Under the pieces are notes generated by a model that saw only the letters and a program-made list of their open reading frames with translations, had not been told where the DNA came from and did not search any database. Shown piece after piece: positions 8,159-61,917 of a stretch of DNA of 64,000 nt (within the stretch, counting starts at the first letter, position 1; every line of letters starts with the position of its first letter). This stretch comes from Paragordius varius (taxonomy: Eukaryota > Animalia > Nematomorpha). Both the position numbers and the translations under genes were made by a program. Location: positions 3,720,001 to 3,784,000 of the forward strand of contig OZ176050.1 in the NCBI GenBank assembly GCA_964247055.1. Direction: 5' to 3'.

Positions 8159-11100
8159 TATTATTATTATTATTACATTACATGTTTTCACTCGTAAGAG
8201 CGGTCATGTTATACAACCTGTCTCGCCATAAAACTCTATCTATGGCGTCCTCTGCATTAAGCTCGCATTCTGCTAGCTCTCTTTTTACTGTATCTATCCA
8301 TTTTGTTTTAGGTCGCCCACGTCCTCGTTTTCCCTCAACTATATAACCATCTATTATTTATAATTAGAATCTCTCCTTTCAATGTGCCCGAACCAACGTA
8401 GCCTATTTTTTGACATTCTTTTCCACTATTGGTTTAATATCTGTGCTCCCACGAATAAATCTATTCTCGATTCTGTCCTTTCTAGTTACCCCACACATCA
8501 TTCTGAGCATTTTCATTTCAGTCACGTTAAATTGTCTTTCTTCGGATTTTTTGACACCTCATGTCTGTGAATTATACATCATTGAGGGCTGGACAACTGA
8601 ACTGTAAATCTTACCTTTCACTCTAACATCAATATTTCGATCGCATAAAACGCTCGAAATTTTCTAATTTACCCAGCTGCTCTTTATTCTTAAATTAATA
8701 TCGTCAGTTAACGAACCATCTGCACTTAACATAGCTCCCAGATATTTGCAACTTTCTTTACCCTTCAGAACCCAACTATCGTCAACTACCATTTCATGTT
8801 GTGGACCCCCAAAAGTAATAAGTTCGGTTTTTGCTTTGTTTACTTTCAGACCATATTGATCCAGCATAACACCCCATCTGTTTACCGTTCGCTTTAACTC
8901 AATTAATGAATCAGACAAGATGATTATGTCATCTGCATACATTAAATACCATCCTGACTCACATTAACAACCTTGGCTACCTCGTCCATACAAATTATAA
9001 ACAATAAGGGGCTGAGTGATGAGCCTTGGTAGACTCCATGCTTTATTGAAAAGGGCTCTGATAAACCTTGTGGATTTTTAATCCTGGAGGTGTGTGATTC
9101 GTACATTATTTGTAACAACTTAATATAACTTTCTGGCACCTTTTTACGACGGAGACTCCACCAAATAGTTTCTCTAGGAATCCTGTCAAACGCCTTCTCT
9201 ATATCAATCAAAACCCCGTGTAATTCTTTCTTTTTTTTCAATGTGTTTTTCAATCAACCTCCTAACCGCATGTATAGGATCTATTGTTGACTTTCCTGGC
9301 ATGAAACCAAATTGATATCCTTCTATAGATATCATTTTCCTGATTCGCTTTTCAATTATTTATTCAAACAATTTCATAGTGTGCGACATAAGTTTTATCC
9401 CTCTATAGTTACTACATTCATTTATATCACCTTTTCCTTTAAATAAAGGCACAGTTAAACTTTCCTTCCATTCAACCGGGATTTCATACGTTGAAACAAC
9501 TTTATTAAATACACGCTCCAAAAAATTTAATCCAGAATTTCCAAGCACTTTCCAACAATTTATATTTATGTCGTCCGATCCTACAGCTTTGTTGTTTGGC
9601 ATTTCTAACAAATTAGATTCTACTTCCTTTTGTGTAATTGCTTCTATTGGTCTATCAGTAGCTTCAACTGTATTTGGCAAAAATATCTCGCCTACCCCTT
9701 CATTTAAACTCACAAAGTACTCTTTCCATCTTTTTAATATTTCTACATTTTCGCACAGCAAGCTTCCATCTTTTCCTTTTATTGCAGTCGCATAACCTGG
9801 CAAATCCATCCTGCGTTTATTCCTTTGCTGCGCAACTTTATACACTTTGTTTAAACCTTGCTTACTATTTAACTCATTATAAAATAAATTCATTTTTTCT
9901 TTCTTAACCTGGCCGACTAATTTTTTCAATTCCTTATTTAAATTTTTACACTTATCTCTATCATCATCATTCCTTGTATGTCTCCATTTGTCAAAAGCCT
10001 TACCTTTTTCTCGTGACATCAATATTATTCTTTCATCGTAAAGCCAAGCCTCTCTGTATATTTGAGATTTTCCGCCTTTTAATCCACAAACTAGAGTTCC
10101 TGCCTTTTTGATTAACTGACTTACTTTATCCCAATCACCATTTAACCCACCATCCTCGGATAACCGTATTTCTTTTATAAAAGCCTGCCTTTTTTCGGAA
10201 AATTTCTCCCACTTAATACTTTTTAATCTTTGAATAAGAACCACTTTGTTTAGACTTTTCTTTCACGAAAAATTTACAAATAAGTAAATTATGTTGCGAA
10301 CTAACCTCTAAGTTTGGCACGACCTTACAATCTATTACAAGCTTCAATAAGTCTCTTGGAACAAGTATAAAATCTATTTGAGATTTGTTAATGCCGCTCT
10401 TAAAAGTTACTAGATGACTCTCTCTTTTTTCGAAAAACGTGTTCGCTATCGCCAAATTGTGAGATTGTGCAAATCTGAGCAAATTAATTCCTTCCTCGTT
10501 TCTTTTTCCATAAGAATGTCCCCCGTGCCATATTTCAAATTCCCTTTTTGAACCAAGATGACCATTAAAATCCCCACATAAAAACTTGACTCTGAGCTGA
10601 GGGAGAGCGACTATTTTTTCATCTAGAGTCTCGTAAAATTGCTCCTTTTCTAGTTTCGGTAAACCTATTTGCGGGGCATATATACTAAATACCGTTATGA
10701 CCTCGTTACCTACCAAAATATCTAAATTCATGATTCGGCTGTTATAGCGTCTTACTTCTTTAACCTGATTGAACAATTTGGGATTAATGATAATTGCCAC
10801 TCCATTTCGTCCGCCACTTTCACCTGAGTAATATAGTCGATAATTCTCTTCCAAAGTCCTTGCTCCGTTTCCGCGGTAACGAGTCTCTTGTAATGCCAAA
10901 ATATAAATATGTTTAACTTTCATTATTCCTACAATATCATTTAACTTACTTTTCAATGAACCAACATTTAAACTAGCAAAATACATGTATCCCGTATTCC
11001 TTTGGATTCTCTTTGTATTATTGGCCACAACACCAAAACCGCGGCTGGCCAGGCCTGACCGGCTATTACTATACACATCAATATTCATTTGACAGCTTTA

Positions 11101-21535: not shown

Positions 21536-22977
21536 ATAAATGTATATACTTCCATATATATATTGTTTTTAAATGTGATTATATTGAAACATATTAGGAA
21601 AATATTTATTTAGTCTTTATTCAATTATTAATGATTTTTTGTCTCGGTCATAATTCGTAAATATATTTAATTATAACTAGCAATTTATATTAAAAGTCTG
21701 ATAAATTTTTCAAACTCATACCCGTTTTTTTTATATTTCTTTTAATTTCTTTGAATATTTACCCTACAAATAAAATATGTCTCGCCAAAAATATGCTTTG
21801 GGCCCAATCAATTATTGTCATTTTTTGCATATTTGGTTAAGGAATTTTATTTATTAAATTATAAAAAATTATGCGCGTTGTTTTTAAAATATATGAAAAC
21901 AAAGCTTACAAAAATACCTATATTTTAAAGCTAGAAAATTTTTAATAAATTAAAATTGCCTAGAATATAATTATTTGTTTAGGGAGAGTGTATATGATTA
22001 AGAATATTTAATAAGGAAAATTTAAATTTTAAGGTATTTGGTTCTAATTTACGACATTTATATAACAATATTCAGTTAATAGATAAGGTTTGCTTCAGTC
22101 GTAGCCTTTGACAATTCTAGTTAAAGTTATATGGGTATATCAGTGAAAACAGTCAATATGGGGCGTGTATTAAAATTAACAGCTATATTAACTGCTAAAC
22201 TCCCTAAGCTAAGGGGCGTGTAATATCAAAACAACAAATTTTAAATAATTTTGAGATCATAAGGATTAGAAATAGATAATGCCGTCTATCAACGAATGTG
22301 AAGGTGATATTTTAACCGCATGACTGAACAATGGAAGCGGGCTAGATATAAGAAATTGACTTGAAAGAATGGCTAAAAATGTTTCCAATTCCTCATATAT
22401 ATTTTTACGTAACTTTAATTAATTATTTCAAATCAGCACCCATGACCATTTATTTCATAAACTCTTTTTATATATTTTTCCAATTTTAATTTTATGAGCA
22501 GAAGTTTAATATAATATCTAGGTTCATAAATACAAACCATTAAGCAAAAAACCATTTCTAAGGCCTCTTGTGAGTCAGTCTATTATTATAACTGTGATTC
22601 AACCCATATTTTGCTATAAAAATTTAAAGCCATATCAGCAAACAGAGGTAATCACCAAAAAAATATTTTTTTGTCAAAGGCCTTGTACTATATATTGATA
22701 TTCCAAATATCTCTAAATAAGTATATTAAAAAATTAAAATAAATATTCATGGCCATAAAAAGCACTTTTTGGCCACGGTATGAGTTATACCGCTTTACAT
22801 CATATCATATAGCATCAAAGCGAAAAAAATTATTTATTTAATTTTTCGATCGTTTACACATTTTGCAACAGGTGATATAACTTTTGTAATACAAGTTTCA
22901 TAAAATCTTAACAAAAAATTTAAAATATGTTCTGCATGGCAGCATTAAACTCATTAAAGTGATGGTTGCGTTGCTTT

Positions 22978-23916
22978 TTATCCATGATGTTTTCCATAAT
23001 TTCTTGAGCTATATCCTCCGTGGTGGTGATGTCCATAACCTCTATGAGATCTTCCATACGAGCCACCCTGATGTCTCTCATAGTTAGTCCCGTAGCTTGC
23101 GTGTCCGCCATATTGCCTACCATATGATGATCGTCTGCCATGTCCTTTCCAACTCCAGTCATTTAAGGTGCGTTTATATCTTTTGTTATAGGCACCACCA
23201 TGATGTCCCAAAGAGCGATATCCGCTATATCGATGATGATGACCCCCTGAAATAAATCAAACGTTTGAGAAAATACTAAGGATGGGAATAATTGATTGAT
23301 AAATGTATACTATTTTCGGTTTAAAATTTTTAAACCAATATAATTATCAAAGAGCAACACATTACTATGAATAGTAATAACTAAATGCGTAATTATTTAA
23401 TAAAAATTAAAAGAATGAACAATTTCACTTGAAATTAATTTTTATTAAATAAATACGGATGTCCTTTATATTTATCATATTCTTTTGCTTGTATTTAATG
23501 TAGTTTAATGAATAATTAGCTATATACCTCCCCGGTGACCATGACTTTGGCCATAATTGTATCCATAATTTCTTGTTTCATGATGATAACCATAATGTGA
23601 CCTGCCTCTGCCATAATTTAAATCTCGTTTGCTACGTGCTGAACTTAAAGGTAAAATATTTTGCGTCTCATCATCACCGACATCTTGTGCATCTATTGAT
23701 TCTCTGACGTACCTTTTTCCAGTTGAATCGTCTTCAAAATCATTTTCGAATGGGACAGATGGTACTAAATTATCATTTTCAATTTCTTTATTCGCTTGAA
23801 CGCTGACAAATATGAAGAGGCAAATGCTCTATATGACAATAAATAAAATATTTTAAATCCGTTATGACATTACCTTTTTAAGCAGTTTATACTTCAAAAT
23901 ATTGATATATATTCAT
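22978..23916 (-). CDS. Secreted prepro-peptide A, Gly/His/Tyr-rich (197 aa)
   Basis: Exons 23916-23893, 23828-23528, 23246-22978. Signal peptide ...SICLFIFVSVQA; acidic pro-region; RSKR|DLNYGRGRSHYGYHH...; second site RYKR|TLNDWSW...; ends KHHG*. Exon 1 is the least certain part. Confidence 0.8.
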
Positions 23917-25599
23917 TAATGTTGCGTTTTTTACCTTGAGCAATCTTCTTAATATATTTGGATTATGAAATATTGGTTGTATTATGTTTATTTGTGTTTT
24001 TTTTTTCAATTAATAATGATATTTGGATTTCCGAATATGTGGAAACTGTTTTTATTATCTAAAATACTTTAGTATTATATCATTTTGATGTATTAATTGA
24101 AAATGATAAAAAAATTATTTTTATGTTACTTTAACCTTTTTTTAAAACCAAAAAAGCGTTTTGGGATAATTCAGAACCTAAACCGCGGTTTCATAAAATA
24201 TAAGTTTAAAATTTATCTTTTTAATTTTATACGATGAAAATTAAATTTTTTTATATTTTTATTTTTTTCAGCCTTATGCCTCATCAATATTTATTAGTTA
24301 TAGTCATTTTGTAGAAATTAGGTTTGTAAATTCAAATAAGGAACCGAAATCAAAACCATTTTTTATACAAAAAACAACAGAACTAAAATTTTTGGAGCAG
24401 AACACAGTGAAATCGGAACCAATAACCGTTTTAATCCAAGAGCAAAAATGAAAAGTATATAAGGATAAACACATAAAAATTAAGTATAGTGTAATGTAAA
24501 TTACCAATAGAAGTATGAGTTGGGGTTTCATATCAAACGATACAAATGTATTAGATTTGATGAAAAAGTAGTGCTTGCTTAAAAAAACTTGCCTTTTTAT
24601 ACCTTTTTACCAGACACATCAATTGACCACCGTTTTGAAGGTTAACGTTATTGTCGCAATATTAATTGTGGTTTTTATCGTCGATGTAACTTAATTTTGT
24701 AAAATTTATGATAAATTATTATTTAACCTTATCACTTTTATTTAACCGAGGATAACATTTTGATACTATAATTATCAGTGATCTTTATAATTTTTTATGA
24801 ATAATTTATGTATAATGATATTTTTACATGGACAATTATTGTCAACTCTACGATTATGATTTAAAGAATATAAATAATTCAAGTCTACCATGTAATTTTT
24901 GCAATTAAAACCTTGATTTGTCAAAATTACCATTATTGTCATAAAATAATCGATTTATTATAAAATCATAGTTATCATTTGTGAATGATGAACGATTACT
25001 AAACTGTATATGGGTTTTATATGCTAATCTATTCGCTATCCTCTTAGGGGGCAGTCTAAGGATAAATATATATTTAAAAACATTATATGGGTCATAACTT
25101 TAAAGGGATAGAAAATACAAAAATGCTAAATTCAAAATAAACATTATATTTAAATAGATAACGACCTTTAAACCAGTCAACTTTAAATTAATTTTAAAAT
25201 TATTATTTTATATCTATGTTTTTGATTTAAAACCAAATCCTTTTTATCACTTCATTATTATCTTTTTAGGTAGTTTTTTACCCAGAGCGATTGTGAATTC
25301 CAATATTTTAAGACATATAGGACCAAATTTAAAATAAAGCAATCTATGGCAATTTAGGGGCGCAATATTAAAAAATTAAAAGTACTATTGTAAAAACACA
25401 TTCCCATACGTTTTGCCGCCATTTTTTTCCTGGATTTTTTAAGGATAGGCACTTATAATCTATGTTGCATAGAATTCTAGTTTATGCCCTTTAAATCTCT
25501 AAAGATACAGTCAAGAAGGCATTTAATTAAAAAAAATTGGGAGAAAGAAATCCTCAAAAATTAAATGATGAATTAACAGTTAATATTGCAATCATAGCT

Positions 25600-26510
25600 G
25601 TAAATTTTTATGAAATAATTTTAAGTTTTTAAATATTATAAAATAAAATATTTTAAAAATGTCGCTCTTGATAAATAAGTTTTGAGAAAATAAGCTGCTA
25701 ACATTTTCGGTAAGTTTTGGTTAAATTATAAAACTTATTTAATCAGTTAAATTATTTTTATTATAATATCTTGTTAAAGTTTTTTTTATTCACCAAGTTG
25801 GTGTAAAAAGCGGTATACATTCCAAGACCTTTTAATTGATTATTTTTTAAATACTAAAGACAACCAAATATTCGTAAAAATCCCAATACAAATATTATTT
25901 TGTCATTAAACAGACTTGTTACCTGGATTTGTAAGGATTGTTGGATGATATTCCACTACTTTAAAATCCTATTTTAAATAAATTATGTACTTAATAATTA
26001 TAACTCATGTAAGAATTCAAAATAAAACAGTATAAATTTTTTATACACTCATAAACCCGATGACAAAAAATGCAAAAATAAAATACAATATTTTTGGTTT
26101 TATTTTGATATATAAGTATTTTTTACTGAATAAAATATGAATGTTAAGATTTTATTAGTGAGTCTAGGTAGAAAATAATTAAAAAAAATATTTTAATATA
26201 GTTTCATTAAATTTTTTTGTCTTTTAAATTTGATAAACGAAAAACGCCATCTTTAAAGCTGAAATTTTATAGAAACCCTAACTATATTATTTTAAGCTAT
26301 TTATATATTGAAAATATCTTCTAAAATGATAATAAACCATAATTCAAATTTTATCATTATTTTTTAAATTATCCCTAACCTTAATTTTCACTTTTTGCCC
26401 GATTTCGATTTTCTATCAATATTTAAAAAATAGGTTGTCAAAATAAAAAATTTTGCGGCAAATGAATACGCTGGTCATAAGCTATTTCATGTAAAAAAAT
26501 TTTTTTACAG
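25600..26510. repeat. Degenerate copy of foldback family 2
   Basis: 26290-26500 aligns with 39900-40090 (gcggcaaatgaatacgctgg). 25860-25990 aligns with the centre of the 39-40 kb palindrome (ggattgttgg.tgatattcca). Confidence 0.55.
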
Positions 26511-26511
26511 A

Positions 26512-26514
<3 letters not shown>

Positions 26515-26542
<28 letters not shown>
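26515..26542. repeat. (TA)n microsatellite
   Basis: Pure TA run at the junction of two repeat families. Confidence 0.9.
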
Positions 26543-26545
<3 letters not shown>

Positions 26546-26549
26546 TGTT

Positions 26550-27100
26550 ATAACATCTCAACCGTTTATATCGTTTCCATCATGCTCAAAATAGTATGGC
26601 TTCAAAAAAATTAAATTTTTAGTATGCATTTTTTAAAAAATATATTTAGTTATCAAAATTTAGCATATATTTAAAATTATTGTACAATGTCGGAGTTTTG
26701 CGTTTATTTTAAGAGCACAGTCCATTTTGAAAGAGCTAAAAAATTTGGGACTTTCAGAGCCCACATCTAAAAATTTAAATTTTTTAAAAATATTGTGCTT
26801 TTTATATGTAGTTTATGTTATATTTTAGTAATATTTTTGAAATAAAGCATTTAGCATTCACCAAAAAATATATTTGAAAAAATTGCGCACCTTTTGCAAT
26901 TTTATGCGGAGCCCTCACAAAAGTGTAAATAACTTTGTTTGATAACTCGGAAAGGTTAAAACCAAAAGCACCATGATAATCCTAATATTTTTCTATCAGA
27001 ATATGTATATATTTCATTAGGATTTTTTTTGTGGAAATGTGTAATACACCACACCGATGGTGTAAAAATAGGTAAAGTATGTTTTGTTTTGAACTGCGGT
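26550..27100. repeat. Single arm of foldback family 1
   Basis: Begins cgtttccatcatgctcaaaatagtat and stays collinear with 12510-12930. Confidence 0.65.
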
Positions 27101-28024
27101 GAAAGAAAAACCATGTTGAAGAAAAGTTAAGTGATACAAAAAAATGTTTGGAGAATTAATATATTTTCAACATTTTTTATCCACAACTTATATTGCAGAA
27201 GATTCCTAAAGATCATAGCGAGGCATGAGAGGGCACTGCTAGATTATATGTTTAACGCAAAAATTTTATAGCCACATTTTGCTTAATATTTTTTCAACAT
27301 AATGAATGTATTTAGAGACTAATCCCGATGAATAGCTTAGAACGGGCTTAACTAAAATTGTGCAATTCATAAACGTGAAATTTATCCTTATTATTATAAT
27401 TACAAAATATTTTTAGCAATGATCGCTTTTTAGATATACTTTTTGTTAGGTCACAATAAGAAAATAAGACGCTATAGTCAAATAAAAATATGTAAGATTA
27501 GTAATAGCAATCCAGATAAGGTTCATTTGGTAAAACAGGAAAATATTATTACGATCGATTTATGCTGCCTGTTAATGACTCTTTAATGTACAAAAAACTG
27601 AGAGATCCTTATGAATATATTTTTATATAAATTAATTTAATGGCCACAAAATTACTCACGATCATATTCATTATTAAAGAATATTTTTTATTTTATGTAA
27701 ATTTTGAGAATAATAAATTTGTTTTCTGATTTATGCACTTTTGCTTTTTGATTTGAAAAAAATTAAATAAAAAACGTTTGAAATTAAAACATGCTTCGGA
27801 AAAAATGTTTTTAGTTTTTTTAAAATCTCTGGGGAAAATGTTTCGATTAAATTTGAAATATATATTCGCCTGTGGATATTTTTAACTGAGATAAACAATA
27901 AAAAACCATATTAGAATGCGACATATTTATTCAAATTATGATATGAAATGTGTGTATTTTACATAATAAATTTCTTTTGAATTTGGGAAGGCAGTTTTTT
28001 GGAACGTCTTTAGATAAACTGTAA

Positions 28025-28985
28025 TCAACCATGGCGTCTACCTCTTCCAGAATGTCCTTTTCTATGTCCACCAAAGTGACCGTTAGACCCTTGGTGACTA
28101 TTTCTTCCCGAACGGCCCTGGGAACGTTTTCCTCGGTTATGAGATCTTCCGATATTTTTTCCACCTCGCCGATTCCCTAAAAATAAATGATTGATTAAAG
28201 ATTTAGATCAGTGGTACTTAAACCGTGGTTCTATGAGAGCCTTATTATGGTTCTGAAATATGTTAGATGTAATAAAATAATAAAATATTTTTAAAAATCG
28301 GCAATTACAGTCTCTGTGACTAGTTTCAAATCCTAAAAAGGGGATTAATTTTCAAACTGATTATATGAGTGCGACATTGGATGCGTTAATATCGTTACAT
28401 AATATTTTATCTTATATTATTTAACGACTCTTACCATAAAATATAAAAAATGAGCCAGTATTTAAGCAAGAAAAAGGTCATTTTAATATTAAGCGCTCAC
28501 CACTAGAACGTGATCCTCTTCGGGAGCCTGCTCTACGTCCGCGCCCACCTCGACCCCCACTCTTGCGAAGACGTCGGAAAGAGTTTCCTCTCCGACTGTT
28601 TCGGGCACGACGGCCCCCTCTACCAACAGATCTGCCCCGGGCTCCATCTCTACCTCTATTGCGATTATTCAAATCTCGCTTGATTCGCGGTTCTGAAATG
28701 TTTTTGACTTGATCCTCATCAATGTTATCAATAGTATCGTCATCGCCATCAATATCAACATCCGCAGATCTCTTGACCAAAAAGGAATCATCTTCAAAGC
28801 CTTGTTCCAATCCTAAATCATCGTAATCAACTTCGAGATAATCGATTTCCAATTCGGCGCAGCTTACACACATGAAAAGGCACAACCCCTAGCGTATACC
28901 ATAATATCAGTTTTATAATTTACTTTTTTAAGTAAAAACAAAAAAATAAGAGTATTACCGCAATCAGAATGTAGCAAGATTTCAT
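28025..28985 (-). CDS. Secreted prepro-peptide B, Gly/Arg-rich (188 aa)
   Basis: Exons 28985-28959, 28888-28501, 28176-28025. Signal MKSCYILIAGLCLFMCVSCA; 60-aa pro-region with 22 D/E; RIKR|DLNNRNRGRDG...; 108-aa mature part with 32 Arg and 4 Lys; ends RRHG*. Confidence 0.85.
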
Positions 28986-29050
28986 GGCTTGTAGTTATGA
29001 TGAAAGATTGAATTAAAAAAAATAAGTGAATATTGGTAAAATTCACGGCC

Positions 29051-29058
29051 TTTTTATA
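29051..29058 (-). promoter_or_regulatory. Candidate TATA box of prepro-peptide B
   Basis: Minus strand ggTATAAAAAgg ~65 bp upstream of the ATG at 28985. AT-rich background lowers certainty. Confidence 0.45.
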
Positions 29059-29472
29059 CCTTTTTTGGTGACATTCTCGTTTTTTTTGAAGTTTAAAATA
29101 ATATCAAAACAAATTTTAAACACGGATCTTAATTATGCATCTCAATAATTAATTATCCTTGTTGTTACAATAGATATAATTATTTCCACACCTATCATAT
29201 AGCTTTTAAATTCATGACACGACCTTCTGGTCAATACATTTTTCATCTTCTTATTTGATAGTTCTTTTTTTATAATATTCATATAATTGATTTGTGTTCA
29301 TAATTATTTTAATTATATTATTTTTAATGTGTGTTTTGCATAAATTAACCAAACTGATCAACAACAAAATGACCATTTGAAAATATATTTATTATAAACA
29401 AGGTAAGGTCATACATACATACATCCATACATAAAACCAAAAATAATGATAAATCATCAATTATGTTGTCTT

Positions 29473-32400
29473 TTATTTATTTCTCCTGGCCTCCAAAAAC
29501 TTTTCGATTTGTGCCACATCCTGTTCTCCCATAAACTCAGTGTAATCAAAATTTTCTTTGAAATACAATCCCCCCTTCTGTTCCGTAGAATAAGAAGCTT
29601 GCTGAGAAGCATAAGAGCTTGCTTCCTTAGTAGCACCACCTGAAGGATAAGCCGCTGAAGTTGATTTATCTGAAATGGATTTATTGGCATCTCTTGATGA
29701 AGACATTCTCCCGGTACTTGAATAACTGGTTGGATCTTTTGCTGACGATGAATACAGACTAGTATCAATCTCATAACATTCATCTTCCGTTGTGGTTAAA
29801 CTACCCTTTGACGCATTGGATGCTTTATGTTTTTGCTTGTTCTCTGATTCGAGTTGGGCCAGTTTCTTACGTCTTTTTACTATAATGATTACTATTATAA
29901 TGGTGACTAAAATGATAACAAGAACACAAGCTATGATGACATACATAATTTTTGATATGCCATTTCTATGTTCCTCTCTTTGCTGTTGGGATAAACTATT
30001 TGAGTTATTTTTAAACAGAGTAAATTCTATGGTTAGCGTTGTTTTCGCAGTTGATGATTTCTTAGCAACATTTTTACTATCATCCAAAATACAATTTCGT
30101 TCCAAAAATTTTAGGTGATACCGAGCGTTTTTATACGTGCAATAGATATTAACAAACATATTTTTCACTTGTTGTTTGGTAAATCCAGCTCGAAGCAAAA
30201 ATTCAGTGTAATTAGGATACTTCCATGTGTCAGTAACAGCATTGTAATAGTGTACGTAATATGTTTTAAAATGACACATACATTGCAACGGGTTTCCCGA
30301 GAAAGTTAAAAAATCGTAACCCCTAGTGAATGTCGCTTCAGGAACATTTTCTAGCCGATTAAGGTGAAGGTATAAGTGAGTTACACTTTTAGGGATATAT
30401 AAATCCTCCAAACTTTTAATTAAATTATTTTGCAATGATAATATTTGCAATTTGTCCAAGCCTTTAAACGCATCTGAGTGGATGTAATTTATGATATTAC
30501 CCTCTAAAAGAAGTTGTGTCAAGTTGGTGAAAGCTGTCAAATCATTTTCATAAATTTTGGCAATCATATTAAAGGTTACATTTAGGATATCTAGGACAGG
30601 AGATTGCGTTCGTAATGCACCCATGAGTGTTGTAATTTGATTAAAACTCACATCAATACGGGATAACTCAAAGTAATTTGGAATATCAAAAATTTCAAAA
30701 GTTTTTAGATTACAATTCACGAGTGATATATAGTACGGATGAAATGTTTGAAGGTTGAACGGACCATCCACACTCGACGTATCAGCTATAACTGTACCCT
30801 TCACATTGGATAAATCAATGTTTAGGAAAGTTACAGCCCCAAGTGTTTGAAAATTGATTTGTAGCAACGAGGACAAATAGGTGGTTATAGAGACATAATC
30901 CAAATTATTACAGTATAGCATTTGCGGTAATTTGCGGGCTGCATTCATTCTCTTTAAATTTTCCGGTCCAATCACCAATTTATCCTCATCCGCTAATGGG
31001 AAGTAGTGACAGTATTGGACCATTTCATCATACTGCATATTTTCTTGATGATTACATTTACAAGGATTCTCAGGCTGCCAAGCAATTAATTTTATGCTCC
31101 GTTTATTTTCTAAATCAATACATTCCATAGATTCACCATTAGCTGCTCTTAGTAGTGGCATACTACCACATCCACACTCTTTACTTTCCATAGTTTTTAT
31201 GACAAAATTTTTATTATCCTCGGGTATCATTTCACATGGAAAATTAAAACTTGTGGATCTTATAAATTTGAAACTTATGTCAAGGAATCTCATGTTGGAA
31301 AACATGGGCATATTCCCAAAATATTCTAATGGGTTATCCCCAACATACAATTGGATTAGATGGGAAGCCAGGCGTGGAGGAAATACTAGATACGATATAG
31401 ATTTTAGAAAATTCCGTTGCATATATAATATTTCCAAAGCCTCTAATTGATTGAAAATACCCACACCCAACTCCCCAATTTTATTATCGCTGAGATCCAA
31501 TATTTTAAGCCTGGGTAAACCATTGAAAGCCGTAAATGAAATGCTATCGATAACGTTGCTGCTTAAATTTAATTCCTCCAAATGACTCAGGTAGACGAAT
31601 GCATCATTTTTTACACGCGCAATAAGGTTACGTGAAAAATTTATACTTATTAGCGTTTGGCTCATGCTAACTAAGTTATTAGATACCATGCACATTTCAG
31701 GAGAGTACATTATCGTTAGAGTTTGTAACCGTGGTAATTGAGCGATTTCGCCATCTGCGAATATTCCACCGGGATTTATCAGCTTTAAATGAGTTAAAGC
31801 TGTGTCCTTGATATATTCAAGAGTGCATTCGAATGTTTTTACGCTATATTTTGGTTGTGTGTTATTCACACAAGGTGGGGGTGATTTGACCATCGAAGCA
31901 AAAGTACTAGGGACATTGTTGATTATGGTGACATTGTTTAAAGTTACACAAAATTTGGAAAATTGATTTGGCACACTAAAGTTTATTCCGTGAACATCGA
32001 AGAACGCTAAGGATTGAACTGCGACTGTAGTGCCATCGATGGAACCAAAAGATTTGTTAACATTCCATTTACCTGGACCGCATTCGACATCAAACTTGTT
32101 TCCTGATGTTATAAATATAAAGATATCGCTTTATGTTTTTGGCTGGATGTTGAAAAAATGATATTTGCTAAAATATTGGGTGCAATTTATAAAATGAATA
32201 TATAAAAACTTCCTTAAATAATTATATCGATTTGTTCTAAATCAGGGGTAGTTTAACATGGGGCTCTCCGGAATGTGTTGCTTAATAAAATATAATCTAC
32301 ATAAATATTCTATTTATAAAATCTCTTCTATTTAAAATAATTCGAGCGTAAACCTAGGGCTGTTATGCAGCCCGAGTCCTTCGGACTTCTTGAGGGTCGG

Positions 32401-34947
32401 GGGGGCGCTATTTGAAAAAAGCGACAACAAAATTGTGATCCATATATGTGAATTATTTCGAAACATTTAATAGTTAGATTCTCATTTCAAAACGGCGCTT
32501 CATAGAATTTTCAAAACCGTGCATTCATATTAATATATTTTTTACTGGTGTAAAGGCCCCAAATTGACTGCTAAAGGAAAAAACCGCTATACAATAATTT
32601 TTACCTTTTTATGGGTATTATTTAAAGCCTTTATTGAACTCGTATGCTCAATTTTTTGAAAATTAGCTCCAAACCGCGACTGTATGGCGTTTCAGTTTCA
32701 AAGCGGTAGACACTACCCATAGACCTATGTGGAAAAAACGCTGAAAAAAATTCTTTGCCTTTATAGGGCAAATATTTGGAATAATTTTTGGTACCATCGT
32801 GCCATGGGTTACTCGAAAAAATACTCCAGCACTAAATATCGTTATATGATGGAGTGTTTTTAGGGCATAAAGGGCCTAAGTAACGGCTAATTTTAAAAAA
32901 CTACACAACCTAAATTTTTGCCTTGTTACGGATAATATTTTACTATTGAACTCATATGCCTGATAGTTTTTCTGAAGTTTAGCCCCAAAGGCACGGTATT
33001 TCTATATGAGGTGGAAGTTTTTAGCGGGTATCTCCTTACCCAGCAGCCAATATAAAAGAAACTCACGACTAAAATTTTTGCCTTTTAACAGGGAGTACCT
33101 GGAATCCTCATTGAATTTTTTATTGTTTGATACCTTGGGTGAAAAATAGATCCAAAAATCTATTTTTGTGGACTTAGTTTTTTTAAATTACATTTTACGG
33201 AAGGGCGGGTAAAAAGAGGGCCTAAATTAATACGAGTTAACTATGTTCGGCGCAATCAAAAAAAATTTAAAAAAACATATTTTAAAATCAAATGTTCCAT
33301 CACGTTTCCGGAAAACTGTCGTAAAACGATTTTTGTGGACTATTTCCAAAAAAACCCGTTTCTTACACGGGGTGGGCCCGAACTGGGGGCCTAATTTAAA
33401 AAAAGGGGAAGCTATTGTCGGGGCATTGATTCTATTTTTTTGACATTTACATTTGAATGGGTCTACCGGTTTTTCAGAAGCAGATAAAGCCAGCATTTTC
33501 CACTAAATATATAGATTCGATTTAATATACTCAGATTCCTTCAAAAAGATTTTTAAATATTCTTTTCTCAATTCACTCCGATTTCTATCGCTTGAATTTC
33601 CAAAACTTCATTGGTTTATCGATAGAGAATTATAATTAATTTTTTAGGCCCTAAAATGGCCATATGCTAATTTTACCCTTTAAAATTTGAAGTATTAACG
33701 GTAGTTTAAGATATCAATAGTAGTTTATCATTAAAAAAATATTCGGTAACGGATTTTGGCAGTCGATACGGCCCAAATTTGTGTTAGTCACCTCTGTTCT
33801 AAATATAGATTTTCAACGATAGAATCCATTTTAAGGAAAATGATATTTGTATTGAAATATAAAGATTAAATTCTAAATCAACTAAAAACTCTAATATTAA
33901 GTTTATAAAAAATTATTCTAATAATTGGCACATAAAAGTTGTATAAATATTACTTATGTAGTTTTACCGTAAACCAGTTAAAATGGCTAAGAAAATTTGA
34001 TTAAATCATACAATAGCGACCGAAAAGAAAGATTATTTTATAGCGATACTGTGGAACTTCGTTGGCTTGTTATTATTAACACACCCAAATTAAAATTTTC
34101 TCCAATTATTTCCAAATAAATGAGTTTAAAAAGCTGTAAAACTATTATTAATTTAATTTGGGTTAGGTGCAGGGGCTATTTTAACAACGAGTCTAAGTTA
34201 TATCAAAATTATTATAGCTATTAAAAGCATAACGGTTAATATATTTAAATATTAATTTTATTTTTACATTACAATTACATAACATCGTTTGAATAGACTA
34301 ATCCGCAAACGGTAAAAATAATTAAGATTTTAAATTTACACACAATGAATCCTTTAAAAATCCTGTGTACCCTCTTTATACTTTTAAGATAAAATCACGG
34401 CTAAATACATCATCAGTATCATGATCCTAAAAATTATGAAATGTAATATTATTTTTATTGTCTTTTTAATGGATGTTGAGGTTTAAGTCACTTTTAACGG
34501 TTTTTTAAATAAAACTTGGGTCTTTGAAAAGTGGGAAGTGCATAATAAGTTATTTTAGTGGCGCTTTTTATTTCCAAAGGAAGGGTTTTACGAAGGTTGA
34601 TTAAATAAACACTAATCTTGCCTTTTCATACCTTGTTTTCCACTATGATCTCCATTTATTTCGACAGTTTTGCATTTTGCAACGGTGTTGGAGTTAGCCT
34701 GTGCCTGTGCCTGTCCCTGTATACTATTTGTCTTACCAATGTTTGCTGCTAAAGCTCTATTAGTTCTTTTTGTCGTTTCTAATTCGTTGGTTTCAAGCAT
34801 TTCATTTAGCTTCTTTAATTCTTCCAGATAATTTGGTATCTGAAAAATGTCTCCTCCATCTGTCACATTACCTTGGGTTGATTGGGTCAAAATTTTACCA
34901 AATAATATTGTTGTTAGGGCAATGATTACACATGTAAATTGATGCAT
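29473..34947 (-). CDS. Type I LRR transmembrane protein (Toll-like ectodomain, no TIR), 981 aa
   Basis: Exon 1 34947-34632 (signal peptide, donor caag|gtatga, phase 1) joins exon 2 32102-29473 (acceptor catcag|, phase 1) in frame. Two LRR blocks (LEELNLSSNVI, LKILDLSDNKI, LQILSLQNNLI) separated by a Cys cluster; LRRCT NPLQCMC; TM IMYVIIACVLVIILVTIIIVIIIV; KRRKK; ~134-aa Ser-rich tail. Confidence 0.88.
32340..33520 (-). mobile_element. Repeat family A, long copy in the LRR gene intron
   Basis: Inverted relative to 400-970, with ~600 extra internal bp (32550-33160) containing repeated aatttttgcctt-like units. Confidence 0.7.
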
Positions 34948-54168: not shown

Positions 54169-57100
54169 TTAAACATTTTTCTTGAGTGTCCTTTGTTTTT
54201 CAGCCTTTTCCACCAATTTTTCAGCCAGTAGCAAGCCCTTGCGGACTCGTATTGCATTAAGATAAGTTTGAGCTCGATTACGTTTTTCCACATTTAAGGA
54301 ATCACCTTCGTCCATATCTTTGATTTCATCATTAAGCTCGGTTTCATTCGACTTGAAGTGTGTAGTAGTAGAATTATCCAGAAAACTTAATTCTTCCAAT
54401 TCGGCTTTACTTAATGGTTGTTCATCTAATATCTGGAATAAAAAGATAGTTAGTTGTGTTTGAAAACAAAGTGATGTTAGTGTATAAAATATAAGACCCT
54501 TTTATTTGGAATAAATTGGAAAAAAGATTTATCTACATTTGAAAAATAAAATATTAGTATATAAAAAAGAAATTGCGTTTTTGCCAAAAAACTTAATGTA
54601 AAAAATTTGAGTACGTTAAATTTAATAATATATGGAGTAAAAAGATATTCTTAGTAAATATACCTCCCATTTTGCAAATGATAGTTGAGGATTAGCTAGA
54701 CCGCTAGTTTTAGTCCTAAGTTCATGCGTGAATCCAAAACTCTCTACCATTGGAAGTAAGGATTTAACGCTAAATAATTGTGTGCCTTCAATCGATTCCT
54801 CCGATACAATCTTGCCATGACGCTTATGTAAGACACCATACATTTTACCTAAATGCAAAATTAAAGTAAAATTCGAAATTTTTGTGGGAATATCTAGATA
54901 TTTCAGGAAAGAATTAGCCGATTAAAAAAGTCTCGTTAATAGTTAGATAAAATCAATTTATACCTAAAACTTCAACATTGACTTGTACATCGCATGCATA
55001 CATTGCTAACATAAGGCGAAGTGATGATCGATATAACGTGTATTGCAAGCGATTTTTTATTTGAGACCCCACTGTGCCTGCTTGTAAAATTTGTTGACAA
55101 GATTCTTTTGAAAATATTTTCTCCATTCTTTTGTCATCCACAACTGACGGTTTTAGTGGAATAAAACCATTAATTAAAAGGGTTAAACACAATTTTAGCG
55201 AAAGTGTTTCGATAGAAGTGTTCATATTGGCATAAGATCCAGCAAATGCTTCCTCAAACTGTATCTGTCCATTGGCAAATGGTAATTTCTGGTTGGACAA
55301 ATAATTGGCTAAAGCATTCAGCGACACGTAGTAATAATAGTAATTGTTTAATGTACCCGGGCTCTCATCTTCATAATTGGATGATTCGCTTTTATCCTTT
55401 GATAAAGTGTTTTGTAAATATTTGTCACACTGTAAAAGTGATTGATAATTTAATCTTATATACATGTCATTGACGATAAATGATATATTTCGCATAGGTT
55501 CACCACACAGTGGGCCAGAAGCCACGATTTGATTAAATGCATTAATTATACTGCCATTCAATGTTGGTGACATAAAAAACTGCGACAAAATTGTAGAAAC
55601 TGGCATATCCAGTAAATCCACTTGCTTTATGCCGTCTATGGCTCCGGAAAAATCTGAGAGAAACGGAAAATTATAAATCAACAAATTTATGTTTGAGTTA
55701 TCGTATGCGGCAACGTAAGCACGTTCATGGGGTAAATATTTTGTGCGTAGATTATCTTGTGCATATAAAATGCCTAGTGTACACCAACAAAATGGTTTAA
55801 AACTAGGCGTAATAGCAGCATATTTGCCATGCGCTTTTATGTGACTTTTTGATTCAGATCCGGTTGTTTTTGTTTGGCAACCTTTTGTCCCAGGTTTGAT
55901 GATAGAGTCTGAACCACCAGTTTTGTAAGAATCAACAATGGAAACATTGTCGAGTTTGGTGGCACTTAAAGGAATAAAAGAGTCATGCGAAATAATTGAT
56001 GCTATTTCATCCCCATCATTCGAAGGTGTTTCTCCCATTTGTGTTACAATATGCGAGGTATTAAACTGTACTGATGTTGCTTTATTTCGATCTTCCAACT
56101 TAGCTAAACGTTTAATTCGTTTAACTCGGTCACATTTACAGTTTTCGTTGTTAGACGACAATGTTGTGGACAAGAGTTGGATTGCAGAATTAAAATTTTT
56201 CGTGTCGGATGAGAGTGCCAATGATGAATGCTCACCATTCAACAAATCAATGTACATAGGGCACAAACTTTTTGTTAAATTATGCGTTTTTTCAAACGTA
56301 TCAGATGTTTCATTTGCTATATAACGCGTTTCGACATTTAAATCCACCGTTTTATGCACAAGGGAGGGGAGAGCAGGAACCTGTAATATAACTCCCATAT
56401 TTCGAAGGATAGATATAAATTTTGGACTATCTGAATGTTTTGATTGCATCAAAACTGTATCATTTGATCCTAAACATTTTGTATTCTCTTGTAATTGTTG
56501 TTTAGAGTTTTCTGCATGCGTATTATACAAATTCGTTTGCTCATCGGTTGACGTTATAAAATCATACTGATAATTGGATATAATAGTTTCACGAAAGGGA
56601 ACTATTGGTTTAGAAACGCTAAAATGTGCGTGAAATTGTTCAACTAAATCACTGTCATTCATGGTATTTAATGCATTTATATGTGTGGTGGTATCATTGT
56701 TGCCTTCAGAGTAAGATAACTCATCCATAATGTGAGCCAATTCAAGGATGCAATGTTCCAAATGAACTTCCCCAATTATCTTAAGTATGAGTTGACCGTT
56801 ATTGTTGAGATAAAACTTGGAGGATGGGTCGGAAGCGCATAGCAATTTAAGGGCTAAACACAAGAGCAAAATGAACAATTTATCAATATTTGGAACAAAT
56901 TTATTTTAAATTTAATTCTTTAAAAATATGAATAATTATATTTAAACCACGAAAAAAAAATTTAACCTTGATGTAGCTTTTGATATAAACCAATTTTTTT
57001 GGGTTCAATGGCAACTTCCAGCAACGGTTGAGCGTAGTGATATAAATTTGACTAAAAAATAGACAAATATTTAATTAAAACAGTCAATTATAATTTAAAG

Positions 57101-60100: not shown

Positions 60101-61917
60101 AAATAATAAAACCTTAGCTCCCTTTCTAATCATTTTTTCTTTGGTATGGAAATAGTAATCACCCCACAAAGTTTTGTTCAAAACGTTTCGACTAAATCCG
60201 AGTTTTTTAGCATATAATTCTGAAAATGTGGCAATACTATATATCAAAATATAATTTATTATCACACATAAATTATTAAAAATGAATAAAAGATTTTGAG
60301 TTTTAAATTTTCATAAATAAACATTTGGTTTAAAGGTAAAAAGTACGTAAAATTGTTAAAATACGACAACTAAAAAAATAGTCCACAAATACTAATCGAA
60401 ATTATTTCTACAAGGATGATTATTAACATGATTGAGTAAGTTAAAATTAATCACTTCATGTATTGTTAAAATAAAATAATTATCAAAAATATTAATAATT
60501 TATTTCATACACAACATATAAACCTAAAAAGCCATCCATCTAAAGCACTAGCAAACAAAACGTTTCCTTTCGTTGGACAGAAATAAAGACTTTCATCCGA
60601 GGGTGCATTAAATTCCATATCGTTTTCTAAAAGTGTTAGATCTTCCTTTTTGTTCTAAAATATTGAAAAATAATTAATTTTAATTACATAGACCCATATC
60701 AAAATATCAAAACTCATATATTTAACAAAATAAATAAACATTTATCAATGAAAATATGATATTTTATGTATAAATTCACTATATACTAAGGGATTTAATT
60801 TATAAACAGTTACAAATAATTTCGAAAAATCTATTTAAAATAATAAAAAAATTTTATAGAAAAACCTTTTACCTCGTTTCGATCTTGCATCGTAAAATGA
60901 GCTGATGCAATAAGTTCACTGAAAAAAGAGTTTACCTGTAAGAAAATAAAAAGTTTAAATTTTATTATATTAATAAAAAAAGAAAAAAATAACTAAAAAT
61001 GTTTACTTCACCCAAAATCTTTTCAATGTGTGTATAAGCTTCCATGGGCGTTAATTTCGTTTCCATAATTAAACGATCTATTTTGTTTAGGACTAATATG
61101 ATGGGGAGACCTTCATTCCATGTTTGCCGAATAACGGTTTGAGTCTATATTTTATTTTTCATATTAATCATTAAAATTATAATATTTGGACATAAAATTA
61201 AAAATATATGTCGCATTATTTAATTAAATAACTTATTATTTTAGATTTATTAAAGGAGAGAATTTAAATTGAGGTTAGTACTTAAATAGGTGATACAGTC
61301 GACAGCTAAGGCTATTAGGGTTTTAAACATACCCGACCCTATACAAACACACACTATGAAACATAAAATCCATAATATAAAATGTTTATTGTAATTAAAA
61401 ATCTACAATCAAAAATATAATTTCCATAAAAATGGTCCTTCAATATTTAATTTTAACTGTATATTAAATTAAAATAATAAAATGTAAAAATTAGCATTTA
61501 AAAACACTTTTTTACTTGCGGACAAAGTCCTTCAACAACATCGATTAAAACGACAGCGCCGTCAGACAATCTGACTGCAATAGAAACTTCATTGCTAAAA
61601 TCGATATGTCCAGGTGAATCTATCAGGTTTATCAAAAATTTATCGTGTTGATTCGCCGCTTCATAAAGTAGGGAAATACAACTAGATTTTATAGTTATCC
61701 CCCTGTCTTGTTCCTCTTTCTTGTTATCCATATACCGTAACTTTCCAGCCGTTCTTTTGGCAATGAGTCCGTTCGAAGATATAAGATGGTCGGCAAAAGT
61801 TGTTTTTCCATGATCAACATGTGCTAACAGACAAATATTTCGTATGCACGATGGATTTTGCGAAACTTCAAAAATTAAATTTGATCGAGTGAGATGGCTA
61901 TTCAAAGAAGAGTGCAT
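54169..61917 (-). CDS. EFL1: Elongation factor-like GTPase 1 (60S maturation), expanded to ~1,530 aa
   Basis: 15 exons: 61917-61516, 61144-61007, 60935-60873, 60655-60524, 60236-60113, 59858-59779, 59393-59254, 59060-58944, 58665-58273, 57898-57721, 57554-57149, 57051-56967, 56853-54964, 54848-54664, 54432-54169. [37 protein letters not shown]; EFL1-specific C-terminus [18 protein letters not shown]. One-base phase mismatch at the exon 3/4 junction. Confidence 0.95.

Follow-up and report, generated by a model that had tools for sequence, protein, structure and literature searches.

A predicted tandem gene pair in Paragordius varius combines a conserved prepro cassette with chemically divergent, Gly-rich cationic mature parts

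In frog precursors of the dermaseptin type, paralogues share a conserved signal peptide and an acidic pro-piece with KR at its end, while their cationic C-terminal peptides diverge beyond recognition, and an intron splits the leader region. The pattern of a conserved leader in front of a variable peptide is found in armadillidins, cathelicidins and dermaseptins (PMC7017220), and the antimicrobial peptide families of Hydra are described as marked by a signal peptide, a bipartite charge, an arrangement in tandem paralogues and restriction to their taxon (PMC10945409). The armadillidins are Gly-rich peptides of about 50 amino acids in which the leader is conserved while the mature part varies, and synthetic versions of them inhibit bacteria; they are defined by a repeated GGGX (3-7 copies) and a conserved, Ala/Phe-rich signal peptide of 19 amino acids, the second residue class differs from species to species, being Phe, Tyr, Arg, Ser or Ile, and the synthetic CE and PP sequences end in Gly (PMC7017220). 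In nematodes, the NLP/CNC genes of C. elegans form tandem clusters of Gly/Tyr-rich peptides that serve as antifungal effectors (PMC2453101). Here we describe two neighbouring genes, A and B, predicted on the minus strand of a 64,000-nucleotide stretch of Paragordius varius DNA (assembly GCA_964247055.1, contig OZ176050.1, positions 3,720,001 to 3,784,000; hereafter the window, to which all coordinates refer). We tentatively propose that these tandem paralogues encode convertase-processed, secreted polycationic peptides, restricted to their lineage, with a role in host defence. On present evidence the pair is an orphan of a well-known design, that of cationic-peptide precursors with an anionic pro-piece, and no new principle is involved.

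The three-exon structure that an initial annotation of this DNA had assigned to each gene was recovered when the strand was read and the exon borders were fixed by script. Gene B (28025-28985, 188 amino acids) begins with an exon of 27 nucleotides (28959-28985) that encodes MKSCYILIA and ends at the donor GTAATA. Its first intron (28889-28958, 70 nucleotides, phase 0, GC content 20%) leads to exon 2 (28501-28888, GC 48%), which encodes the remaining signal peptide, an acidic pro-piece and the start of a Gly/Arg-rich region, with the motifs FEDDS at 28784-28798, RIKR at 28676-28687 and DLN at 28667-28675. After a second intron (28177-28500, 324 nucleotides, GC 27%), which interrupts a Gly codon in phase 1, exon 3 (28025-28176, GC 49%) supplies a Gly/Arg/His/Ser-rich end that closes with RRHG and a stop codon. 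A candidate poly(A) signal, AATAAA, lies 94 nucleotides past the stop codon on the same strand (27926-27931) and is a motif match only.

Gene A (22978-24531, 198 amino acids) is built in the same way. Its exon 1 (24505-24531, 27 nucleotides) encodes MKPQLILLL and has the donor GTAATT, and its first intron (23829-24504, phase 0, GC 22%) measures 676 nucleotides. Exon 2 (23528-23828, GC 37%) again encodes the remaining signal peptide and an acidic pro-piece, here followed by the start of a Gly/His/Tyr-rich region, with FEDDS at 23724-23738, RSKR at 23625-23636 and DLN at 23616-23624. The second intron (23247-23527, 281 nucleotides, GC 21%) also lies in phase 1 within a Gly codon, and exon 3 (22978-23246, GC 45%), whose composition agrees with that of exon 2, encodes the second Gly/His/Tyr-rich half and ends with HHG and a stop codon. 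Candidate poly(A) signals, ATTAAA and AATAAA, were found by motif match only at 22833-22842 on the minus strand, about 136-140 nucleotides past the stop codon. Because exon 2 contains no Met and a stop codon stands immediately 5' of its acceptor, gene A needs an upstream exon with an ATG, and the proposed exon 1 is backed by a promoter block as well as by its length, phase and donor type, which are those of exon 1 in gene B.

This promoter block is an 18-nucleotide sequence, AAAAAGGTATAAAAAGGC, that occurs at 24591-24608 upstream of gene A and, unchanged, at 29048-29065 upstream of gene B, both on the minus strand, placing a TATA box about 70 and 73 nucleotides 5' of the respective ATG. Its two exact copies in the window stand only upstream of the gene A and gene B ATGs, and when up to 2 mismatches were allowed, 3 occurrences were counted in the 64 kb against 0.01 expected. 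All four introns run from GT to AG behind T-rich tracts. The initial annotation had further placed a phase-0 intron inside a signal peptide of 20 amino acids and a phase-1 intron inside a Gly codon. The second of these is common to both genes, where the codon belongs to the Gly-rich region, and the first intron does follow codon 9 in both, within the hydrophobic core of the signal sequence, but the predicted signal peptide of A is 21 amino acids long. The list of open reading frames (ORFs) holds, as the annotation had stated, only exon-2 and exon-3 fragments of genes A and B plus antisense or out-of-frame ORFs.

Both predicted proteins start with a hydrophobic core followed by small residues at positions -3 and -1, in keeping with the -3/-1 rule for signal peptide cleavage, which would fall between VQA and N in A (after 21 amino acids) and between SCA and E in B (after 20). 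The pro-pieces that follow have the expected lengths of 56 (A) and 60 (B) amino acids and share FEDDS at residues 40-44, with a KR behind it; beyond this stretch, GDD(D/E)T is also conserved between them. Their net charge and isoelectric point (pI) are -7 and 4.2 in A and -16 and 4.1 in B. The junction of an RxKR site with DLN, given in the initial annotation, is present in both proteins as RSKR (residues 74-77 of A) and RIKR (residues 77-80 of B), each followed directly by DLN. Standing downstream of a signal peptide and matching the R-X-K/R-R motif, the two sites are putative targets of a furin/kexin-type convertase.

The mature parts that such cleavage would release are strongly cationic and chemically distinct. 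Mature A (121 amino acids, net charge +15, pI 10.2) is Gly/His/Tyr-rich, with 28 Gly, 20 His, 18 Tyr and 15 Arg, which amounts to 23% Gly, 16.5% His and 15% Tyr (55% for the three together). Mature B (108 amino acids, net charge +34, pI 12.0) is Gly/Arg-rich, its 32 Arg and 4 Lys facing 2 acidic residues, and further contains 29 Gly, 14 Ser, 10 Asn, 6 His and no Tyr. These sizes and compositions are those previously predicted. Both mature parts are free of Cys, have 6-8% hydrophobic residues and end in His-Gly before the stop codon. Mature A shows a weak internal duplication (z 2.9) into two halves of about 50 amino acids, divided by KR-Y-KR-TLNDWSWKGHG-RR (23070-23114, minus strand, exon 3), a short unit that carries Trp and for which the comparison of A with B revealed no counterpart in B; the second unit of mature A, like the first, opens with xLN after KR. 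Mature B has 10 more dibasic sites. Patterns of a possible amide donor were seen as GHG-RR in A and as four G-[KR][KR] sites in B, although in Gly-rich sequence such patterns are often expected by chance. AlphaFold2, run on B exon 2 as a single sequence, gave no confident fold (predicted local distance difference test score, pLDDT, 52; predicted template modelling score, pTM, 0.11), which is consistent with disorder and is weak evidence when taken alone.

The paralogy of A and B, proposed from the sequence by the initial annotation, was clear in the prepro part, where the local alignment reached z 12.7 and none of 2000 composition-preserving shuffles attained its score. In the same kind of shuffle test, the pro-pieces alone gave z 6.9 and the signal parts alone z 5.8, and BLASTP returned E 4e-4. 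The mature parts gave z -0.6, a similarity within that of composition, and are related by position and composition only. A conserved cassette with a fast-evolving payload had been suggested: the cassette, which comprises the signal peptide, the acidic pro-piece and RxKR-DLN, is indeed conserved, and the likeness of the payloads does not exceed composition, but from two deeply diverged paralogues no evolutionary rate can be given for the payload. A tblastn search with both proteins found no third paralogue in the window.

It is very probable that A and B are real protein-coding genes for secreted products. The GC content switches at the predicted borders between 37-49% in the exons and 20-27% in the introns, in a window whose overall GC of 27.7% agrees with the 26.9% reported for the assembly of Gordionus montsenyensis, and the synonymous codon choice (GGA/GGT, AGA, CAT, TAT, GAT, AAT) follows that of a neighbouring gene for an 833-amino-acid leucine-rich repeat (LRR) protein. 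When DNA contigs of a near relative were compared over the locus, with thin coverage, all four coding differences among the variants listed were synonymous third-position changes, three of them in gene B at 28748 and 28859 (exon 2) and at 28085 (exon 3). With 22% synonymous changes expected by chance, such a result has P ~0.002.

Searches found no relatives of these genes. No family was matched in Pfam by any of the four large exons of A and B, word-indexed searches that used the B prepro part and A exon 3 as queries found nothing among 5.8 billion proteins, and an exhaustive HMMER search of 1.84 billion cluster representatives with a profile of the aligned prepro parts gave 0 matches at E <= 0.001. 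Feature searches of the ESM Atlas yielded no usable match, a scan of metagenome contigs with the prepro alignment produced 475 pattern matches of which 0 were confirmed, and look-ups of the exact products of the B exon-2 ORF and of the neighbouring LRR protein returned no record. The sequence searches used the exons separately. For the LRR protein, the 5.8 billion proteins offered no close orthologue, only generic LRR matches of 20-47% identity that covered small parts of the query and were mostly from arthropods. Since the products of the window are absent and the LRR neighbour of the pair finds only generic matches, the lineage is unsampled in these libraries, and because the window's own proteins are missing from them, the blank result says little about close kin. 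Within these limits the proposal of an unrecognised, lineage-restricted family stands, with no Pfam family, no homologue and no orthology to a characterised family found.

Among the described systems, the Hydra arminins and periculins resemble A and B in layout. Behind a signal peptide both have an acidic part and then a strongly cationic C-terminal part (-7/+15 in A, -16/+34 in B), and they are tandem paralogues without homologues outside the lineage. However, they show no sequence relatedness to arminins (0 profile-search matches, no Pfam match), their payload is much longer, Gly-rich and Cys-free, they have a full R-X-K-R, and they belong to another animal group. In the armadillidins and in the arthropod glycine-rich cationic peptides (holotricin-3, tenecin-3, acanthoscurrins) we find the same linear, Gly-rich sequence with a second class of Arg, His, Tyr or Phe. 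The halves of mature A have about the length of an armadillidin, and mature A likewise ends in Gly; armadillidins may be a close functional analogue of each half. In contrast to armadillidins, A has a single GGGH and B none, the signal peptides differ, A and B have an acidic pro-piece of 56-60 amino acids where armadillidins have no long one, and no homology was detected.

The precursors of frog dermaseptins share with A and B a conserved secretory cassette and a divergent cationic payload, but dermaseptins are short amphipathic helices, while the A and B payloads are long and rich in Gly, with few hydrophobic residues, and no homology is seen. The NLP/CNC genes of C. elegans, from what would be the sister phylum of hairworms, are likewise tandem genes for small secreted Gly/Tyr-rich peptides with dibasic sites. 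Their precursors are short and are not known to have an acidic pro-piece, the YGGYG-type repeats are absent from A and B, and mature B has no Tyr. The Gly/His-rich structural proteins (Nereis jaw Nvjp-1, the His-rich proteins of squid beak, trematode egg-shell precursors) resemble mature A in composition only, with no sequence match found; the composition is absent in B, and these proteins are not known to have an acidic pro-piece with a furin site. Because A and B lack the motifs that define each of these families, as well as homology to them, we propose that they would work like these families, and not that they belong to them.

Inferring transcription, splicing, cleavage, amidation and activity of the A and B products, we propose that each of the tandem genes would be driven by its own TATA-box promoter, and that the signal peptide would take the precursor into the secretory pathway before being removed (at VQA-N in A and SCA-E in B). 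A furin/kexin-type proprotein convertase would then cut after RSKR or RIKR, perhaps with an extra cut at the KR that follows FEDDS in both; the P1' Asp and P2' Leu of the RxKR sites suit the preferences of furin. The cut would part the acidic pro-piece from the polycation, a Gly-rich, disordered chain devoid of Cys, with DLN at its N-terminus and His-Gly at its C-terminus, whose last Gly could serve as an amide donor. Until its release, the cationic part would most likely be masked or escorted by the acidic pro-piece, which would partly balance its charge. The product of A may be one or two Gly/His/Tyr/Arg-rich peptides of about 50 amino acids or, if every dibasic site were used, two Gly/His/Tyr-rich peptides of that size plus TLNDWSWKGH(-amide). 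For B, the use of all dibasic sites would leave eleven small pieces, so that a selective furin-type cut at RIKR makes more sense, with one Gly/Arg-rich peptide of about 108 amino acids as the putative product. Their role would most likely be in host defence, as Gly-rich cationic antimicrobial peptides of a non-lytic kind. After the duplication, the payload could then have drifted to two different chemistries while the cassette for secretion and processing stayed unchanged.

Several observations weigh against this proposal. No transcript supports the genes: none of the runs that cover the locus is on record as RNA, and three small presumed-RNA runs with the same species label gave nothing at the locus, which does not prove silence. 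No homologues were found in the libraries searched, and therefore nothing is inherited from a characterised relative, and only four coding variants were among those listed for the near relative, with 29 more variants outside that list. Mature parts with so few hydrophobic residues (6-8%) are not amphipathic membrane-lytic peptides, and 108-121 amino acids is long for antimicrobial peptides unless they are cut further; full use of the 10 extra dibasic sites in B would fragment its mature part. Finally, the Gly/His/Tyr composition of A suits cross-linkable structural proteins equally well.

This last point leads to the alternative that fares best, although we consider it rather unlikely, namely that the products are building material or glue for cuticle, larval hooks or stylets, egg-string glue or a cyst wall. 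The acidic pro-piece would here keep the polycation soluble by intramolecular charge pairing until a convertase frees it, after which A could be cross-linked via tyrosine or metal-histidine bonds and B could condense as a polycation with polyanions. Compositions of the Gly/His/Tyr type are known in jaw proteins hardened by metal and in the tanned proteins of egg shells and cements, and the proportions in A (23%, 16.5% and 15%, respectively) are of this kind; the products of both genes are long, Cys-free and disordered, with few hydrophobic residues. The furin-type cleavage of matrix precursors also has a nematode precedent, being established for cuticle collagen precursors. However, mature B has no Tyr and only 6 His, so that the paralogues cannot share Tyr/His cross-linking. 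Neither protein contains collagen or other periodic structural repeats (the longest run of Gly-X-Y triplets is 2-3, with no collagen match in Pfam), the searches of Pfam and the protein libraries showed no likeness to any structural protein, and a long acidic pro-piece is usually absent from matrix proteins of this sort.

We give less credit, and regard as improbable, the idea that the genes serve signalling or act on a host, either as multi-peptide, prohormone-like precursors (releasing, for example, TLNDWSWKGH-amide from A) or as arginine-rich effectors that a parasite delivers into its host. A KR is conserved inside both pro-pieces, KR-Y-KR-TLNDWSWKGHG-RR in A reads as a textbook unit of dibasic sites and Gly amidation, and both proteins have a C-terminal Gly, with the four G-[KR][KR] sites of B in addition. 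Yet dibasic and Gly-amide motifs arise easily by chance in Gly/Arg-rich sequence, the candidate short peptide of A is without a counterpart in B, and neither Pfam nor the profile search matched a known neuropeptide family. What is conserved between the paralogues is the acidic pro-piece and the cleavage site, and no candidate ligand.

It is, moreover, a long shot that a parasitic worm, possibly a hairworm, uses the cassette as an export module specific to its lineage, with payloads other than ordinary antimicrobials: B would be an arginine-rich, cell-entering and nucleic-acid-binding polycation sent into the insect host, or A a His/Tyr-rich, metal-hardened material of the cyst wall or of the structures with which larvae pierce, and in either case a single cassette would carry two extracellular chemistries unrelated to each other. 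That A and B are not working genes at all, their precursor likeness being an accident of chance ORFs, decaying duplicates or untranscribed relics, is very unlikely: the want of RNA support and of homologues and the low-complexity sequence would fit it, but the frames are open over three exons in both copies with matching phases and canonical splice sites, the TATA blocks upstream are identical, the GC contrast between exons and introns is sharp, the codon bias is that of the host genome, and the differences listed in the near relative are synonymous only.

The surroundings of the pair, which we read here as tandem genes for secreted cationic peptides, contain several other features. The LRR protein, which has a transmembrane segment and a Ser-rich tail, is encoded on the minus strand in one large exon (29473-31974, 833 amino acids) that ends about 400 nucleotides upstream of the TATA box of gene B. 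Between genes A and B, the region 25800-27050 behaves in the DNA run of the near relative as a high-copy repeat, with many variant contigs, internal skips and a summed contig depth of hundreds to thousands against 2-30 elsewhere; it includes an (AT)n tract at 26515-26545 and is probably a decayed mobile element. At 9360-11088 on the minus strand, two overlapping ORFs of 291 and 294 amino acids resemble, on visual inspection, an endonuclease and the first part of a reverse transcriptase from a retrotransposon lacking long terminal repeats (non-LTR).

Further upstream of gene B, the third match to the promoter block (34620-34637, 2 mismatches) was judged to be due to chance, as it falls on a donor-like AAG/GTATGA that ends another ORF. 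This ORF of 111 amino acids (34612-34947, minus strand) has a signal-peptide-like start, MHQFTCVIIALTTILFGKILTQ, and, closing as it does at the donor-like sequence, may be the first exon of another unannotated gene for a secreted protein. An exon for an EF-Tu-type GTPase (Pfam GTP_EFTU, E 5.5e-35) lies upstream of a 641-amino-acid ORF without a Pfam match, the two occupying 54953-56878 and 61498-61917 on the minus strand, and together they may be an EFL1-like gene that carries a large insert specific to its lineage.

The interest of the pair comes mainly from the neglected animal in which it occurs and from the sharp chemical split between the payloads of A and B. Genes of this kind are missed here by standard ORF or gene finding, and the secretome of the animal is probably under-annotated. 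The two genes offer a compact, testable case of a conserved secretion and processing cassette whose payloads have diverged to different chemistries. The immunity, cuticle chemistry and host interaction of hairworms are almost unknown at the molecular level, and if A and B are transcribed and processed as inferred, they would constitute the first family of such peptides, secreted and cationic, to be described from an animal lineage that has received very little study.

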